A DNA stretch of 63,184 bases, counting the filler, from Dicyema japonicum (taxonomy: Eukaryota > Animalia > Dicyemida): assembly GCA_011109175.1 (NCBI GenBank). It is 7 parts of 7 records of this genome, joined end to end, with 100 filler letters (N's around TTAATTAATTAA, not from the genome) between each part and the next. Parts side by side here need not be neighbours in the genome. Positions count along the whole stretch, not along the records: positions 1 to 9,474 come from RDEW01000126.1; 6 more parts are not named here. One strand, written 5' to 3'. The translations under genes were made by a program, and so were the position numbers. How positions within the stretch are numbered: the first letter of the stretch is position 1; each line of letters opens with the position of its first letter. Of this stretch, positions 1,250-9,474 are shown piece by piece. The notes below the pieces were generated by a model. That model was not told the origin of the DNA. It ran no database searches and worked only from the letters and a program-made list of their open reading frames with translations.

Positions 1250-1872
1250 GATAAAATTCTTCACAAATTTATGTGGTTACAAATATTTTATTAAATATAA
1301 TTTATTTTTTATTAGTAATTCTTTTACAATTATTAGATTAAATGTTTTTTAAATTATTTTTTAATGATTTTCCGGTTACTCTATTTATAATAAAATATAA
1401 ATTAAAAGGAGGGAAATTGTTGTTGATTCTTATGGTACTAAAAAATGCCAATTAATGTGAACATATCTAATGAACAGGATCTTTTAAATGACTTGGCGAG
1501 TACAATTTCTCAGATAATTATTTCTTCTTTTGACTCTGCATTTCAGAGACAAGTCCAGACAATGTTAAAGGGAGATTATAATGTGTGATTTCTAGTCTGA
1601 CAATCACTCCAAGATATACTCACGCAAACATTTCTCTCTTTTGAGTGCCCACAACCAATCAAACAATGTTGATAGCCACAAATGTAGTCAATCAATCTCT
1701 CCTGAATTGTCTGATATCTCTTACAGTTTCAACTCACTTTAACTTTCAGTTTCTTCATAATGTTCACTCAGTAAGTTTTTCTATTTAAAAATAGTAGATT
1801 ATTAGTCTATATTAAACCTTAAATTTATTAGTTTAATAAATAAAATTTTCTGCTGACGTGGTGTATTTTAAA

Positions 1873-2039
1873 ATGGCTATAAACACCCCAACCAAAGAAG
1901 AATTAACTGATATATTTAAACAAATATTAAAGCAGCCAGGAAACCAAGTATAACTATTCAAATAAAACACATTAAAAGACATGTTTCGACTGTGGGACCC
2001 CACATCCGACATGGGCGAGCATAACCTACGGAATCCTAG
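1873..2039 (+). pseudogene. ARFGAP2/3: 5' fragment of ArfGAP2/3-type ADP-ribosylation factor GTPase-activating protein
   Basis: MAINTPTKEELTDIFKQILKQPGNQ, 31-nt intron 1948-1978, then TCFDCGTPHPTWASITYGIL, matching the ArfGAP zinc-finger start (CFDC...WASITYG). The second CxxC is not found downstream. Confidence 0.8.
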
Positions 2040-2311
2040 GTACTTTTATGATTCATACACCCCACTTTTTAGTGGTGAATTAAATTAATGAAATTTTTTC
2101 TAAAATTAATTCATAAAAGTGGTTATAGGTACCATGCGGATTTAAAAAATTTAATTATCAAAATAATCTAAAAATATTTCAAATTTGGCAACCTAGTGAG
2201 TGATTCCAGTTTATAAATGCTTGCATTTGCAGCCAATTCATCTGTTATTTATAGTCCATATATGTTATTACGGTATAATTTTGCGAGAAAAAAAATAATA
2301 AAAAAAATTAT

Positions 2312-2917
2312 TTAATTATTTGTGCGTAAAGTTTTTTTCGGAGGACAAGAGGCCACTATGGCATCTAGCAGTTCGTCAAATGCGTTGTTCAACTCGCTTA
2401 CTTGTCTTCTCCAGAGAAATTCTAAAAAATGTGTTTTAATTGTTTCTACCAGTAAAGTATGATCCCATAAAGTGGCGCGCGGTACCCCTCTGTACTTTAT
2501 TGCGCCTTTTTGCACTTCCCCACATCCTCTCTACAGTCTGAGTATGTGCGAGAGTCGTGGGATCGATAAAATTTCGTCTAAAAGTAAGAAAGTATTTAAA
2601 CAAGTACTTATGATTCACTCTAATATGAGCGCAACCATGAGCATTTAGATCTTGCGTTGAATATCCTATATTTTCAAATTAAATAATGTGATTTTTCCAG
2701 GAATCAGTATGGACAACAGATCCAGGTGCGACATTTCTCTGAATCGCATCAGTAAGCGTTGCTCTGGACCCGTCAGGTACCATCTCCAAAAAGCATTCTT
2801 TAGTTCCACGGCACACTCCCCCAAACACCCTTTGCTGAGCGACAATTCGGCCTGAATGATTCTTTCTCTTGGAAAACATGCTCTCGTCTACTTCTACAAC
2901 TTTCCCTGTTCCACCTA
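2312..2917 (-). mobile_element. Merlin / IS1595 (ISXO2-like) DDE transposase, 3' portion, intron-containing
   Basis: VEVDESMFSKRKNHSGR, VFGGVCR, VHTDSWK, VNH..NFIDP..AHTQTVERMW and EFLWRR motifs; three 27-30 nt insertions behave as introns. Confidence 0.87.
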
Positions 2918-2918
2918 N

Positions 2919-3680
2919 GACCAAGGGATTGTGCATTCATTTAAATCGTTGTATAAAAAAGGAATGAATAGAAATTTGAGTATGGGAACAAATATAGGAA
3001 CATTTTAATATACAGATGAACTTACCAAATTCAAATTAGTTAATGCTCTACCTTTAATTATTGAGGCTTGGAACGAAGTCACAATGGACACTATCAAAAA
3101 TTGCTTTAACGCGGCATTAAATAATTGGGCGAAGATAGATGAAAAAATACTTGAAAAATCCACTGACGAAAAAGGTATTAAATTTAAATCACCTTACAAT
3201 TAAAGATAATGAAAGTGAAATTATTATTGAGTTTCCTGTCTGTGCACCTGTCGTCTGCGAAGAAAACGCGTATCTTGATACAATACAAAATGAGCATGAA
3301 GAAATAGATAGCACAAATGACAATCCCATTGGTTATGCAGATGCACTTAAATATTTGGAAAATATTGAAAAATATTTTTTGCAAGAATNTGCACCTGTCG
3401 TATATCTGTGCACCTGTCGCATTCTGCGAAGAAAACGCATATCTTGATACAATACAATGTGAAGAAGAAAATGAGCATGAATGACAATCCCATTGGTTAT
3501 GCAGATGCACTCAGATATTTGGAACATATTAAAAAATATTTTTTGCAAGAATCTGGTGAACATATTCCCCTGATTACAAATTTGAGAAATATATGTGCAA
3601 AATTAAAAAGAAAAAACCTAAAATTAACGATTACATACAAATTTTTAATTAAAAATTTTTTTTCGTTAAATAAATAGTCT
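2919..3680 (+). mobile_element. pogo/Tigger (DDE_1) transposase C-terminal remnant
   Basis: DQGIVHSFKSLYKK and LPLIIEAWNEVTMDTIKNCFN motifs; stops and frameshifts present; part duplicated around the single N at 3389. Confidence 0.7.
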
Positions 3681-3850
3681 ACTGTATATCCATCCTCAGA
3701 GTGTAAATATGTGAAGATATCAAATAGATTTTTAAGTAGATGCCGTCACCGAAAAATTACACTGAAAATTTAAGTTAATGATCGTTTTCTCCAAACAATT
3801 TCACAAGAACTTGTATAAATTAAAAACACAATTTATTTTGAGAATATTGT

Positions 3851-4688
3851 TCATTTTTTCCTGCCTTTCTTAATACTCTGAAGGAATTAAAATAATAAAC
3901 AAACTTTACGTCGTGCCAAAATCTTATGTTTGACCATTCCAAAATTTTTCATTTTTTTCTTCTCTCGATTAGTAGCCCGAAAAGACTTTTTGGTGGATTT
4001 CTTCCCATTCCTCTTACGTCTCGCTCCCTTCCTTTCCTAGACACTCGTTTTCACACTCCCTCACCTTATTCTCCTCCATTCTCTCCTCACGTGTCTTCTT
4101 GACGCTTTTGTGGAGATGTGTCAACTCAGAGTACGACACTAAGTCAGCAGGACCACTGTCTTCACTATCAGAACTAGAAACATCTTCTGCGACCTCCACG
4201 TCTTCCAAGTCATTTCCAGCCCGGTACTTCCTCAGTAACCTCAAATCGTCATCTCCAAAGACACGTGTTCTACTAGCGATTCTGGCCTGCTCTTCTTTAT
4301 CCCCATCCTGGATTTTATTAAATAATTCTAACTGTCATGTTTATTTTCCCGCCTTCTTCCAACGGAATAACCTCAGCACCGGGAACATAGTCAAAAATAT
4401 TATTCCCCAACTCCAAAACTGCCTTTTTGCCTGAAATTGGTTTCCCCTAAGTTGTAATTTCCATGTTAGCTAACTCTATCTTTACGATGCAGTAGCTTTG
4501 GGTTGACTGTCCGAAATAGAGTTATGAGAGATTTTGCAGACATGGAGGCGGCTGGAATAATACAAAGCAAAGTACATTTTTGTTTGTAGTTCCTATAATT
4601 GACCAAATCTCTGAGAAGGTCCTCGGTCATAGCATGAGGACACCGACAAGAGATTTCTCTTACTGTGTTTAAACTTGAAATATTTAAG
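3851..4688 (-). CDS. SDAD1: SDA1 (ribosome biogenesis factor), 3' half; 5' part lies in the gap
   Basis: Introns 4552-4575 (24), 4447-4474 (28), 4308-4332 (25), 4037-4064 (28), 3878-3904 (27). Spliced product LNTVREISCRCPHAMTEDLLRDL...LITLFRTVNPKLLHRKDRGKP...DYVPGAEV...ATNREKKKMKNFGMVKHK matches SDA1 signature segments; TGA at 3851-3853. Confidence 0.92.
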
Positions 4689-5353
4689 NNNNNNNNNNNN
4701 NNNNNNNNNNNNNNNNNNNNNNNNNNNNNNNNNNNNNNNNNNNNNNNNNNNNNNNNNNNNNNNNNNNNNNNNNNNNNNNNNNNNNNNNNNNNNNNNNNNN
4801 NNNNNNNNNNNNNNNNNNNNNNNNNNNNNNNNNNNNNNNNNNNNNNNNNNNNNNNNNNNNNNNNNNNNNNNNNNNNNNNNNNNNNNNNNNNNNNNNNNNN
4901 NNNNNNNNNNNNNNNNNNNNNNNNNNNNNNNNNNNNNNNNNNNNNNNNNNNNNNNNNNNNNNNNNNNNNNNNNNNNNNNNNNNNNNNNNNNNNNNNNNNN
5001 NNNNNNNNNNNNNNNNNNNNNNNNNNNNNNNNNNNNNNNNNNNNNNNNNNNNNNNNNNNNNNNNNNNNNNNNNNNNNNNNNNNNNNNNNNNNNNNNNNNN
5101 NNNNNNNNNNNNNNNNNNNNNNNNNNNNNNNNNNNNNNNNNNNNNNNNNNNNNNNNNNNNNNNNNNNNNNNNNNNNNNNNNNNNNNNNNNNNNNNNNNNN
5201 NNNNNNNNNNNNNNNNNNNNNNNNNNNNNNNNNNNNNNNNNNNNNNNNNNNNNNNNNNNNNNNNNNNNNNNNNNNNNNNNNNNNNNNNNNNNNNNNNNNN
5301 NNNNNNNNNNNNNNNNNNNNNNNNNNNNNNNNNNNNNNNNNNNNNNNNNTTTT

Positions 5354-5765
5354 ATGTCAAGAAAAAATTCAAGAGTATCAGAAGCTACGAGAAGAGCACT
5401 TATAAATAAGGATGAAGAGGGTGGCGATTATATACAGCTTGCTCGGGATCTTGGTGTCAAGAGGACAACAGCTATAGCCATTGTAAAAAGTGGAAATCCG
5501 TATGTTTGTAAACGTGGAGGTAGAAGGGATGCTACGATTAAACTTACGGATGATGATATGAATTTGATAATTGAAAAAATTGAGAACAATCCATCAATAA
5601 CATTGAAGGAAATACGAACATTGGTAAATAATAAAGTTTGTATTGCGACAATACATAACCGACTTGATGGCCGATTGATTACCTACAAAATGCTGCGAAG
5701 AGAACCAATTTCCAGGAATAGTCTGGAAAATATAGAAAAAAGAAAAATATTTGCATTTTTCTTTT
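5354..5765 (+). mobile_element. IS630/Tc1-mariner-like transposase, N-terminal HTH region
   Basis: ORF with LARDLGVKRTTAIAIV, RGGRR..KLT, IENNPSITLKEIR, ATIHNRL and RNS motifs typical of the IS630/Tc1 DNA-binding region; truncated before the DDE core. Confidence 0.65.
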
Positions 5766-5774
5766 TTCTATCCA

Positions 5775-5995
5775 AAATATAGCTGTCCATGTGAAAAGCA
5801 CTCGCTCTCTAAAAATAAGCCAACTACCTTTAATGATTGTCCCTGGGCCTTGTCATCGCAAAACTCATCCTCAACGGAAGTTGCAGCCTTTTAAATCTAA
5901 ACGGTAATTCATCAGAAATAATCGTAATTCGTGGGATATAAACATCCTCACCTCTATACTTACCTGTTAATATCGTCATTTCCAAACGAATCGTT
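5775..5995 (-). mobile_element. Helitron PIF1-helicase C-terminal fragment
   Basis: TILTGKYRGEDVYIPRI...FKRLQLPLRMSFAMT(frameshift)KAQGQSLKVVGLFLESECFSHGQLY. Confidence 0.8.
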
Positions 5996-6441
5996 GTTTT
6001 TTAATCAAATATGGAATTACGTAATTTTTATACTCAATAGTCTGGTTCTTTTTGAATAAAAAAGTTTCGAGTTTACTGAAGTTGAATTGTTAGTTTTTTA
6101 AAACCTTGTGATCTATCTTCTTTTCACTAATGATTAAAAAAGCTTAGCAAAACATAATAAGGTTACTGTTAAAAATTAATAAACGATTAATANAATATGG
6201 AATTACGTAATTTTTATACTCAATAGTCTGGTTCTTTTTGAATAAAAAAGTTTCGAGTTTACTGAAGTTGAATTGTTAGTTTTTTAAAACCTTGTGATCT
6301 GTCTTCTTTTCACTAATGATTAAAAAAGCTTAGCAAAACATAATAAGGTTACTGTTAAAAATTAATAAACGATTAATAAAAGCATTTATTAAAACTTAAA
6401 ATGATCTACATTCAAAATATCAGGATCTATTAAATAGTTTT

Positions 6442-7796
6442 CTAATGAATATGAAATCTTAAAATCAAATGGTAATTGTGGATGAATTTTTCTTGTTCTT
6501 GCAGGAACGGGCAAATCAGTGAAATTTGCAGGCAATGGTCTTGTATAAAAAAAATCATCCATTAGAGCCTTATATTAATTTTTTCAATAAATCACATTAT
6601 CAGCAGTAATTCTCTCACTTGATCTTAGTTTCAAAAATTGTTTTAACAACTCTATTGTAGTTTCATCTGCTTCAGGAACTAAATCTTCAAATTCTACCGA
6701 CTCCATTGGATAAAATATAATTTTATTGTAATCAGGAAAATCGACCATTTCCTGATAATTTATAAATAAATAAATCACCGGCCAATTTTCAATCGTAGGA
6801 GTCCCCAAAGATTTAAAAACGCAATGAAGCTGATCAATATCATTTTCTCCCTAAGATAAATATTAGTATAAAAACTGGAAAAAGTGGAGAATTATTTATT
6901 AGTTCGCCAAATATACATCCAACAGNTAGGAGTCCCCAAAGATTTAAAAACGCAATGAAGCTGATCAATATCATTTTCTCCCTAAGATAAATATTAGTAT
7001 AAAGACTGGAAAAAGTGGAGAATTATTTATTAGTTCGCCAAATATACATCCAACAGCCCTGAAATCAAAGTGCAATTTAGTAATACCACAAATCAACTCC
7101 TTCGTTGTAATTTTTATCTCCGTAGAGTAGTTCAGGAGCACGATACCACCTTTGATAAGTTTTTTAATAAACTTATTCACCGTGTAGCTACTTGATGAGA
7201 GTAAAGTCGGGAATCATCTCGACTAAATATTCTCGCTAAGCCAAAGTCGGCAATTTTTAACACGCCTTCTGAATTTATCAATAAATTAGCTGGTTTTAAA
7301 TCCTAAAACACGATCAACCAATTTAAGCTACTCTATGCATTATTTGATTTTTGTGCAGATGTGCAACCCCTTTCAAAAGCATTAACATGTATGCTTTAAT
7401 TTGAGCGTCTGAAAGCTGGAAATTGTAGTCTTTAATAACTTCAGATAAATCGGAAGACATATATTCGAATACTAACACAACCCCCAATCCATATGGTAGT
7501 ACTTCATACAAACTCACAATCTATAAATTTTATAGTAGTTTGAAACATGTAGATGATCACTTATATATTGTAGCGCCTTAATTTCTCTAGAAATAAGTTA
7601 TCAGCTTTTAACTACCGGATTACATTGTTTGATATTCCAACTTCCTTGACATTTCTTAGCTGTACTTTTTTTAGCGCGACAATTTCTTGTGTCTTTAATT
7701 GTACAATCTTTTTAATTATACAATTTTATTTTTGGCCTTTACGACTATTCCGTATGCTCCCTCGCCAATAGATTCTAGTATTTTATACTTGTCCAT
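6442..7796 (-). CDS. CDK20: Cyclin-dependent kinase 20 (CCRK/LF2 family) with 9 micro-introns
   Basis: Introns 7693-7721, 7587-7615, 7521-7546, 7303-7331, 7150-7180, 7059-7086, 6982-7006, 6752-6778, 6569-6595 (25-31 nt). Product has [55 protein letters not shown] and PDYNKI. 6798-6925 is duplicated around the N at 6926; the exact C-terminus is uncertain. Confidence 0.92.
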
Positions 7797-8034
7797 TATA
7801 AACGATCTGTTTTTAATTTTAAACGATTTCTATGGTTTTAGAGTGAATTTAGTTTATATTTCATAATTATAATTTAATTATTAAAAGTGATGTTTAAATT
7901 CGATCTTATAGAAGATATAAAATACCCACATCGTCGCTTGTGCCACAGACCGGATGATTTCTTCTTTAGACACCTTTCTTGATCTCTTCGATGCCTTCCG
8001 AAATGAANTATAGAAAAGAAATGTCTGTTTATTC

Positions 8035-9474
8035 CAGCGGTTCTCAACCGTGGTCCCCAGAAAATTTTTAGTGGTCCCCAGGAATTTTCGAAAAATAAAA
8101 ATATATTAAAGTTAAAACTAATTGTACAATTAAGTATAAATCAAAAACATTGAAATTAATCCAGCGGTTCTCAATCGTGGTCCCCAGAAAATTTTTAGTG
8201 GTCCCCAGGAATTTTCGAAAAATAAAAATATATTAAATTTAAAACTAATTGTACAATTAAGTATAAATCAAAAACATTGAAATTAATCTGATTTGATTAG
8301 CGTGGTTTATCATTCTAGTTATGGTTAACAAGAATCGTCGTCTTTGGTCGGATTCTTACGTACAATTTGGATTCACTAAATTCATTGCCCCAAATAATGA
8401 AATAAAGGCAAAATGCATGATTTGCCATAAAATTTTGGGAAACAATTCACTGAAACCTTCTCAACTTAGGCGCCACAAAGAGTCTGTACACCCAGAAAAT
8501 TCTTCCTCACATGAATATTTTAAAGTCAAAAGAACGAAGTTTGATTCACAGCCAAAGCTTGAGTGGTTTAATAAATCTCAAGATAAACCGAGATTAGAAG
8601 CATCATATGCTGTAATTTTAATTTATATCTAAAACAAATAGGTCTCAATGATTATCGCAAAAAACAAAGCTGCACATAATTCTGGTGAAAAGTTAATCAA
8701 ACCAGCGGCTCTTGAAATGGCTCGAATTTTGTTTGGTCCGGATGCAGTTACCAAACTTAAGGACATACCATTATCCAACGATTCAATTTCCCGTAGAATT
8801 TCAGAATTGTCATCTGATATCCTGGAGCAATTAATTAAAAGAATCAATAAAAGTAAATGCAGAATAAGTATTCAATTGGACGAGTCAACTGACATTTCTA
8901 ACGTCTGTCAGCTTGTGTCCTATGTTCGCTTTGTTGATGATGAGAATATTATTGATGAGTTTTTATTTTGTTTGGAGATGGATGGACACACTCGTGGAGA
9001 GGACATCTTTAATATTTTTGACAATTTTATGAAGACGAATAAAATCCAATGGGATAAAGTTGGATCTATATGTACTGATGGTGCACCTGCGATGATTGGT
9101 CATCAATCTGGACTTGTTACTCGTATTAAGGATTTGGTTCCTGATATTGTTACAAGACATTGTGCATTGCACAAATATGCACTTTGTTCAAAAACTATGT
9201 GTTCGTCGTTAAGAGAAACACTAAACACTATTGTAAAAGTGATAAACTATATTCGATCTCGTGCACTTAATCATCGAATTTTCCAAACTCTTTGTGAAGA
9301 GTTAGGAACTGATCATTCCATACTACTTTATCATTCTGAAATCAGGTGGCTTTCAAGGGGGGAAATTCTTTCGAGAATTTGTGAACTTTCCCCTGCGATA
9401 TCTTTGTTTTTGCGTGATAATATGCAGCATGATTAGGCCGATCAATTCGATGATTTTACTTTTAAATCGAAAAT
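8035..9474 (+). mobile_element. hAT Buster/Charlie-type transposon (left TIR, BED zinc finger, DDE transposase), truncated by gap
   Basis: TIR CAGCGGTTCTCAA at 8035 and 8162; CMICHKIL..SLKPSQLRRH BED finger; LDESTD, TDGAPAM, HCALH and RWLSRG motifs; 30-nt intron 8612-8641; premature TAG at 9434-9436. Confidence 0.92.

Follow-up and report, generated by a model that had tools for sequence, protein, structure and literature searches.

A Merlin relic and its introns in the window

The window, i.e. the whole stretch of 63,184 nucleotides (filler included) of Dicyema japonicum DNA that was analysed, holds at 2039-2933 an element with a minus-strand transposase gene, Table 1. The best explanation is that a cut-and-paste DNA transposon of the Merlin/IS1595 superfamily left a dead copy here, truncated at its 5' end and with a transposase gene split by spliceosomal introns of the ultra-short host class. 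We put the probability of this explanation, together with the intron history proposed below, at about 0.8. An 85-residue ORF covering exon E1 was used as Pfam query and matches PF12762 (DDE_Tnp_IS1595) over profile positions 6-86 (E 2.6e-8, 34.5 bits, cut-off 27), which bears out the original prediction that the gene is a Merlin/IS1595 transposase. Protein and DNA searches used single exons as queries. A profile-free scan of 1.84 billion representative proteins identified 2360 relatives of exon E1 at E<=1e-3.

Six homologous full-length transposases were also compared with the window DNA by tblastn. In these alignments the motifs VEVDES, HTDSWK and TVERMW of the window align with conserved acidic columns of the homologs. 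We take the D of VEVDES, the D of HTDSWK and the E of TVERMW to be the catalytic residues of the DDE triad (D in VE.DE and.D.W, E in ..IE..W). Exon E4 aligns to the C-terminal (E/Y)F.WR motif of the homologs.

Table 1. Predicted features of the window copy and its neighbours, of Merlin paralogs and of other Merlin lineages. Fractions in the L006 rows are copies of subfamily 2 with GT donor or AG acceptor.
Feature	Position	Strand	Length (nt)	Remarks
3' terminal/subterminal region of the relic (inverted-repeat end)	window 2039-2182			matches to L002 and L003
Exon E4 (last exon)	window 2312-2421	-		ends ..EFLWRRQVSELNNAFDELLDAIVASCPPKKTLRTNN*; stop codon 2314-2312; open frame once intron C is removed
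Intron C	window 2422-2449	-	28	GTAGAAACAATTAAAACACATTTTTTAG, GTAGAAA...TTTTAG; GT..AG, phase 1; sequence read, paralog alignment
Exon E3	window 2450-2577	-	128	RNFIDPTTLAHTQTVERMWGSAKRRNKVQRGTARHFMGSYFT; tblastn, paralog alignment; 128 nt also in L064
Intron B	window 2578-2607	-	30	GTACTTGTTTAAATACTTTCTTACTTTTAG, GTACTTG...TTTTAG; GT..AG, phase 2; sequence read, paralog alignment, tblastn
Exon E2	window 2608-2665	-	58	..YSTQDLNAHGCAHIRVNH..; 58 nt also in L064 and L006
Intron A, decayed	window 2666-2692	-	27	ATCACATTATTTAATTTGAAAATATAG, ATCAC...ATATAG; AT donor, AG acceptor, phase 1; in-frame TAA inside
Exon E1	window 2693-2914	-	222	GTGKVVEVDES...HTDSWK; first half of DDE domain, PF12762
Breakpoint region	window 2915-2933	-		GTCNTAG (2921-2915) preceded by a few codons (..AQSLG)
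Kinase intron	window 7331-7303	-	29	
Kinase intron	window 7180-7150	-	31	
Kinase intron	window 7086-7059	-	28	
Kinase intron	window 7006-6982	-	25	
Kinase intron	window 6778-6752	-	27	
Kinase intron	window 6595-6569	-	27	
hAT-like gene intron	window 8614-8643	+	30	gtaattttaatttatatctaaaacaaatag; between ..EASYA and VSMIIAKNK..
Intron N1	L006 1262-1289		28	
Intron N2	L006 1478-1503		26-27	
Intron A	L006 1726-1756		31	GT 6/7, AG 7/7
Intron B	L006 1815-1844		30	GT 10/10, AG 10/10
Intron D	L006 1896-1926		31	GT 12/16, AG 14/16
Intron C	L006 2002-2029		28	GT 14/16, AG 15/16
Introns N1, N2, A, B, C	L064 (G000:C74:22491-23511)		26, 22, 26, 23, 26	
Intron N2'	L062 lineage, about seven codons downstream of N2		27	GT-AG in 5/5 copies
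Intron X1	L062 lineage, inside ..VQDR-STETL		28	GT-AG in 5/5 copies
Intron X2	L062 lineage, inside ..KQYG-TS..		28	GT-AG in 5/5 copies
L052	G000:C313:557738-558922	-		intronless Merlin

Three short segments interrupt the transposase frame. Cutting out segment A takes away the in-frame stop and gives DSWK-RYSTQDLNAHGCAHIRVNH, cutting out segment B turns VNHKYLFKYFLTFRRNFIDP into VNHK-RNFIDP, and cutting out segment C corrects a frameshift and gives ..GSYFT-EFLWRRQ... The length of intron C is no multiple of 3, so its removal is needed to keep the frame. With all three removed the frame reads DSWK-RYSTQDLNAHGCAHIRVNHK-RNFIDP...GSYFT-EFLWRRQ and stays open to the stop codon. The original prediction had placed these segments and described their lengths and the effects of removing them, all of which we find correct to the base in the minus-strand reading. 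It had also claimed that their removal restores the spacing of the Merlin/IS1595 motifs, and the tblastn alignments agree: they have a 9-residue gap exactly over NHII*FENI (segment A) and a 10-residue gap exactly over segment B, and they end at the frameshift of segment C. Homologous Merlin proteins with these segments as coding insertions, which had been named there as evidence against introns, were not seen by tblastn.

In segment A, the window has AT for GT and a 5-nt deletion compared with L002, the closest paralog (27 vs 32 nt). The earlier suggestion that this AT is a mutated GT is borne out by L002 and by six of seven subfamily-2 copies, which have GT. The AT is a decay mutation and the donor is dead.

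At the 3' end of the element, window 2056-2182 has a 90.6% match in L002 upstream of the gene (1215-1339), inverted relative to the gene, and window 2039-2110 matches L003 at 94%. A matching 5' end or 5' inverted-repeat arm was not found in window 1500-3700, where only the 3' end is kept. The window copy lacks the N-terminal exons (the zinc-ribbon/HTH DNA-binding region) and the element's 5' end; the N-terminal region is present in the relatives L004, L006, L064 and L052. Upstream of about 2933 the homology between the window and L002 is just a 13-nt resemblance, and this was treated as a breakpoint. GTCNTAG is a possible 7-nt remnant of an upstream intron, N2, including its AG acceptor. Full-length relatives have a 22-27-nt intron exactly at this site, between ..IG and G.GK.

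A stretch that, by eye only, resembles a pogo/Tigger-type C-terminal fragment (window 3005-3600, plus strand) abuts the Merlin breakpoint. It holds a 164-nt tandem duplication (3239-3552, 87% match), and a Pfam scan of the piece 3139-3447 gave no match.

The original prediction called the three segments host-sized, and their 27, 30 and 28 nt indeed compare with 25-31 nt in a host gene of the same window. This is a CDK-like kinase gene (7520-6350, minus strand, Pkinase match in Pfam) with six GT..AG introns, whose removal gives the joined motifs HR-DLKPANL, DFGLAR, WYRAPE and GCIFGEL..PLFP-GENDIDQL. The kinase gene also has a 131-nt tandem duplication (6795-7056, with an N inside) that repeats one exon and its intron and looks like an assembly artefact. 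According to the genome paper, the D. japonicum assembly has 67.5 Mb in 377 scaffolds with 49% repeats, and its genes have a mean intron of 38 bp, 6.2 introns per gene and a mean exon of 198 bp (PMC6736024). In a 2026 survey D. japonicum is the only non-myxozoan animal with similarly short introns, median below 30 bp, with splice signals that have shrunk to GTa and AG (PMC13644364).

A zf-BED (PF02892) and hAT-like transposase-type gene in the window (8321-9436, plus strand) also carries a GT..AG intron of this size, Table 1. Micro-introns in transposase-type genes are thus not confined to Merlin.

Conservation of the introns among Merlin paralogs

Three copies make up subfamily 1: the one in the window, L002 at 83% identity, and L003, which is partial. 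At least 40 fragments form subfamily 2; they are 82-92% alike and share 65-67% identity with the window. In a MAFFT alignment both subfamilies have segments A, B and C at matching positions, with GT..AG ends. The splice-site census in Table 1 covers all fetched copies of subfamily 2, 7-16 per site. A further element, L064, is single copy at the DNA level and has five micro-introns at the same sites and in the same phases. The check that accompanied the original prediction, an alignment of the genomic Merlin copies and outgroups to map where the introns are present, therefore finds A-C in three lineages.

Exons E1/E2/E3 are 222/58/128 nt in the window and L064 alike, and the intron lengths differ: 27 (32 in L002) vs 26 for A, 30 vs 23 for B and 28 vs 26 for C. 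Exon lengths equal to the base beside freely varying introns are the classic picture of real introns. Between subfamilies 1 and 2 the exons are 65-81% identical and the introns 33-62%; intron B is 33-40% identical vs 67-81% for its flanking exons. Within subfamily 2 the introns are conserved as much as the exons, as expected under neutral decay after insertion.

Read in the spliced frame, the window and L006 differ at 24/16/55 first/second/third codon positions (107 codons, 70% amino-acid identity), and the window and L064 at 50/27/83 (133 codons, 60% amino-acid identity). Intron interiors differ at 58% when six related copies are pooled, which inflates the p-values. From the excess of change at third codon positions in the spliced frame it is evident that purifying selection acted on the protein during the divergence of the lineages, when the introns were already present.

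No intact copy was seen among the intron-bearing lineages. L006 has stops in its exons, and L064 has two visible lesions, a 1-nt deletion that shifts the frame and one TGA. L064 may be a recently dead element, or a live gene with sequencing errors. Processed, intron-free copies of subfamily 2 were looked for among the fetched loci and none was identified, all flanking-exon pairs being 26-34 nt apart. Every examined subfamily-2 copy keeps its introns, which is what movement as DNA would lead one to expect.

When homologs are mapped onto the full-length relatives of subfamily 2, these carry six introns. L006 spans about 1.88 kb and is bounded by 51-nt inverted repeats with arms that are 88% complementary. 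A target-site duplication of 8-9 bp was sought in the flanks of L006 and L007, where none is clear and the exact termini are fuzzy.

The additional intron, D, lies between ..TVE(K/R) and MWGSAK and is precisely absent in the window (site 2527/2526) and in L064. The most parsimonious reading is a single gain in subfamily 2, which would make D younger than A-C, since subfamilies 1 and 2 are sisters in the exon-E1 tree (92/96). With at most 3 mismatches, all 18 matches of intron D are inside subfamily-2 Merlin copies. An introner-like origin of intron D was rejected, as this search, made with intron D alone, gave zero copies outside Merlin. The six subfamily-2 introns have no common sequence. Each of the six follows an exon that ends in G, and in three cases in AG. 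The coding sequence lacks no residues at the junctions, and the introns are therefore insertions and not intronised exon sequence.

Segments A-C have the features of the ultra-short class of the host: GT/AG ends, a length in the host range, a frame that is restored by removal, and a position and phase that are kept while the interior diverges. The comparison supports reading all three as genuine spliceosomal GT-AG introns of this class. That the three sites coincide over the lineages is far more than chance, since they are conserved in position and phase over three diverged lineages. From these patterns we infer that the Merlin introns are actually spliced in RNA. A word-based protein search with exon E1 for Dicyema transcript-derived proteins that cross a junction returned one candidate, and none scored.

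Origin of the introns

The genome holds Merlin lineages with 0, 3, 5 and 6 micro-introns side by side. The intronless L052 group comprises L052, L053, L055 and L060. L052 is an uninterrupted ORF of 394 residues with PF12762 in a single stretch (profile positions 30-152). It has an internal repeat beside an N that looks like an assembly artefact, and L053, L055 and L060, on three other contigs, are decayed copies of its lineage. The L056 group is uninterrupted across the N2, A and B sites. A fourth lineage, L062/L070-L081 (e.g. G000:C113:706399-707209), has at least 28 fragments that are contiguous across A, B, D and C, and it has three introns of its own at other sites, Table 1.

Gene structure was checked in three foreign relatives, a nematode, a mosquito and an environmental Logan contig, and all are intronless. 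Strongyloides ratti XP_024499727.1 has an 873-nt ORF for 290 aa, the Anopheles aquasalis Merlin 948 nt for 315 aa, and the Logan contig Merlin a 771-nt ORF for 256 aa. The nearest metagenome/Logan relatives are on contigs barely longer than their ORFs, which suggests that the ORFs of P0017, P0027 and P0028 are uninterrupted. In the exon-E1 tree L064 is unresolved among foreign intronless relatives (73 columns; SH-aLRT 88 in a quick tree), and what ties it to a common origin with subfamilies 1 and 2 is therefore the five intron positions and phases that they share. The polarity, too, rests mainly on shared intron positions and on parsimony.

These distributions support intron gain inside Merlin lineages, and more than once. 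We also infer that the direction of change was gain, not loss, and that the gains took place within dicyemids. The original prediction spoke of recent intron gain inside a mobile element. Gain stands, as the checked relatives and two same-genome lineages are intronless. Recent does not hold for A, B and C, which are old because they are common to lineages that differ at 30-40% of their amino acids and at about 50-62% of third codon positions.

The history we propose is that the introns arose within this Merlin lineage after its split from intronless relatives. N1, N2, A, B and C would have come before the divergence of the three intron-bearing sublineages, and D would have followed in a single subfamily. 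A separate Merlin lineage of the same genome would have acquired its own introns at other sites. The U2-type spliceosome of the host would remove the introns from the transposase pre-mRNA, which would have been needed for a working enzyme while the lineage was active, and each new copy would take its introns along, as Merlin moves as DNA. Speculatively, a spliceosome that needs little beyond GTA...AG over about 25 AT-rich bases could rescue short insertions as introns. We lean slightly towards the wider claim that D. japonicum transposon genes repeatedly and independently acquire minimal introns of 22-31 nt, five and then a sixth in the clade of the window copy and at least three elsewhere in a second lineage.

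It could be argued that the segments are small insertions in dead pseudogene copies that were never spliced, and that their GT..AG ends are due to chance in AT-rich DNA, given that every copy examined is defective and that segment A of the window lacks GT. We consider this highly improbable. Three lineages whose proteins have diverged by 30-40% agree in the sites and phases, with exon lengths equal to the base, and GT and AG are the majority state at each site over 7-16 copies. The 28-, 31- and 26-nt segments break the frame, yet the flanking exons have a strong third-codon-position excess, so selection acted on the spliced frame once the segments existed. Equally hard to credit is that the intron-bearing Merlin genes are domesticated host genes and have a host-like gene structure for that reason. 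L064 is single-copy and the exon-intron density is host-like, but at least 40 fragments belong to subfamily 2, many being internal-deletion derivatives, its full-length copy lies between 51-nt inverted repeats, an inverted terminal region is common to L002 and the copy in the window, and disabling lesions are found in all copies.

Inheritance is a less remote alternative than these two, though still an unlikely one. Here an intron-bearing Merlin ancestor or donor species passed on the introns, which then became as short as those of the host, and the relatives that have none lost them. The age of A, B, C, N1 and N2, which predate a deep split, and the unresolved place of L064 among foreign relatives in the E1 tree are compatible with it. 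However, each of the three foreign relatives with a checked gene structure is intronless, the nearest metagenome/Logan relatives have contigs with little room beyond the ORF, and in the same genome two Merlin lineages are intronless and a fourth has introns at different sites. Repeated local gain fits this lineage-by-lineage pattern better than many parallel losses. The introns might also be regulatory, with stage- or tissue-specific retention giving truncated repressors that limit transposition. This would be compatible with the history proposed above, and we think it improbable. Retention of A would give an early stop (the TAA in the window) after the DNA-binding half and the first catalytic aspartate, read-through of A in subfamily 2 ends ...KGNCN*, and retention of C or D would shift the frame, which shows merely that retention would truncate the protein. 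The host genes match the Merlin genes in intron density and size (PMC6736024), so a special function is unneeded, and intronless Merlin lineages coexist in the genome. The window copy is unable to show regulation, because it is a truncated relic with a dead donor.

Comparison with known systems and further features of the window

The Merlin/IS1595 (IS1016) superfamily was reportedly described by Feschotte in 2004. The elements studied here resemble it in the DDE_Tnp_IS1595 domain and, in full-length relatives, in the N-terminal zinc-ribbon/HTH region and the terminal inverted repeats. The many internal-deletion derivatives are similar to those of Schistosoma Merlin (PMC1636069). The difference is in gene structure: the checked relatives have one uninterrupted ORF, and this lineage has 5-6 introns of 22-31 nt.

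Transposase genes with introns are already known, and what this case adds is host-sized micro-introns in Merlin. The transposase genes of Ac, P, Tc1 and PIF/Harbinger also bear introns. In CACTA elements these genes have 1-6 exons, with mostly intron loss and one putative gain (PMC4158355). Such systems share with the Dicyema elements a transposase made from spliced mRNA, an intron number that varies among lineages, and introns that travel with an element moving as DNA. They differ in that the introns here are of the ultra-short animal class, that gains appear to dominate over losses, and that two lineages of one genome gained introns at different sites beside intronless lineages. In the Drosophila P element, splicing control works through retention of the third intron in the soma, which yields a truncated repressor. 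Retention in the Dicyema elements would likewise truncate the protein and spare its DNA-binding part, but the likeness goes no further. Some texts describe DDE transposons with an intronless transposase gene (bioRxiv 10.1101/2021.09.26.461848).

The Merlin introns are like the ultra-short introns of Dicyema genes in their 22-31 nt, GTA/GTT-type donor, AG acceptor and AT-rich interior (PMC13644364; PMC6736024). Both of these papers concern host genes only, and introns inside transposon genes are unmentioned. Introners, i.e. transposons that create introns upon insertion (PMC9860276, PMC12130899), are similar in that new introns are born and mobile DNA is involved, but the roles are reversed, as the introns here appear within the transposon's own gene. 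In the literature searched, which did not cover the original Merlin description (Feschotte 2004), introns are described neither for Merlin nor for transposons of dicyemids.

Animals very rarely gain introns de novo, and how they do so is debated. The first systematic account of animal introns below 30 nt dates from 2026 (PMC13644364). The ancestors of transposase genes had no introns, so each intron in a transposase gene would be a gain with known direction. If the reading as repeated gain is true, the elements are cases in which the birth of new introns in an animal is both dated and polarised. The series of Merlin lineages with 0, 3, 5 and 6 introns would then be natural material on how introns arise and how small newborn introns can be, and it also bears on the question of a limiting or regulating effect of splicing on transposition. 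Where transposases are assumed to lack introns, ORF finding and repeat annotation will break up or overlook elements of this kind in dicyemids and probably also in myxozoans.

The window has some other features. A GC-richer stretch (4000-4500; 44% GC, GC skew -0.39) has acidic/serine-rich ORFs on both strands, and an assembly gap of about 650 N (about 4690-5340) comes after it. A Tc1/mariner-type HTH fragment (5354-5782, plus strand) has weak matches to PF01498 and PF13565. Next to it, a short ORF at 5830-5985 (minus strand) resembles by eye the C-terminal motif of PIF1/Helitron helicases, with no match in Pfam. Two clean two-copy tandem repeats, both at 97%, are found at 6001-6381 (186 nt x2) and 8029-8288 (127 nt x2).
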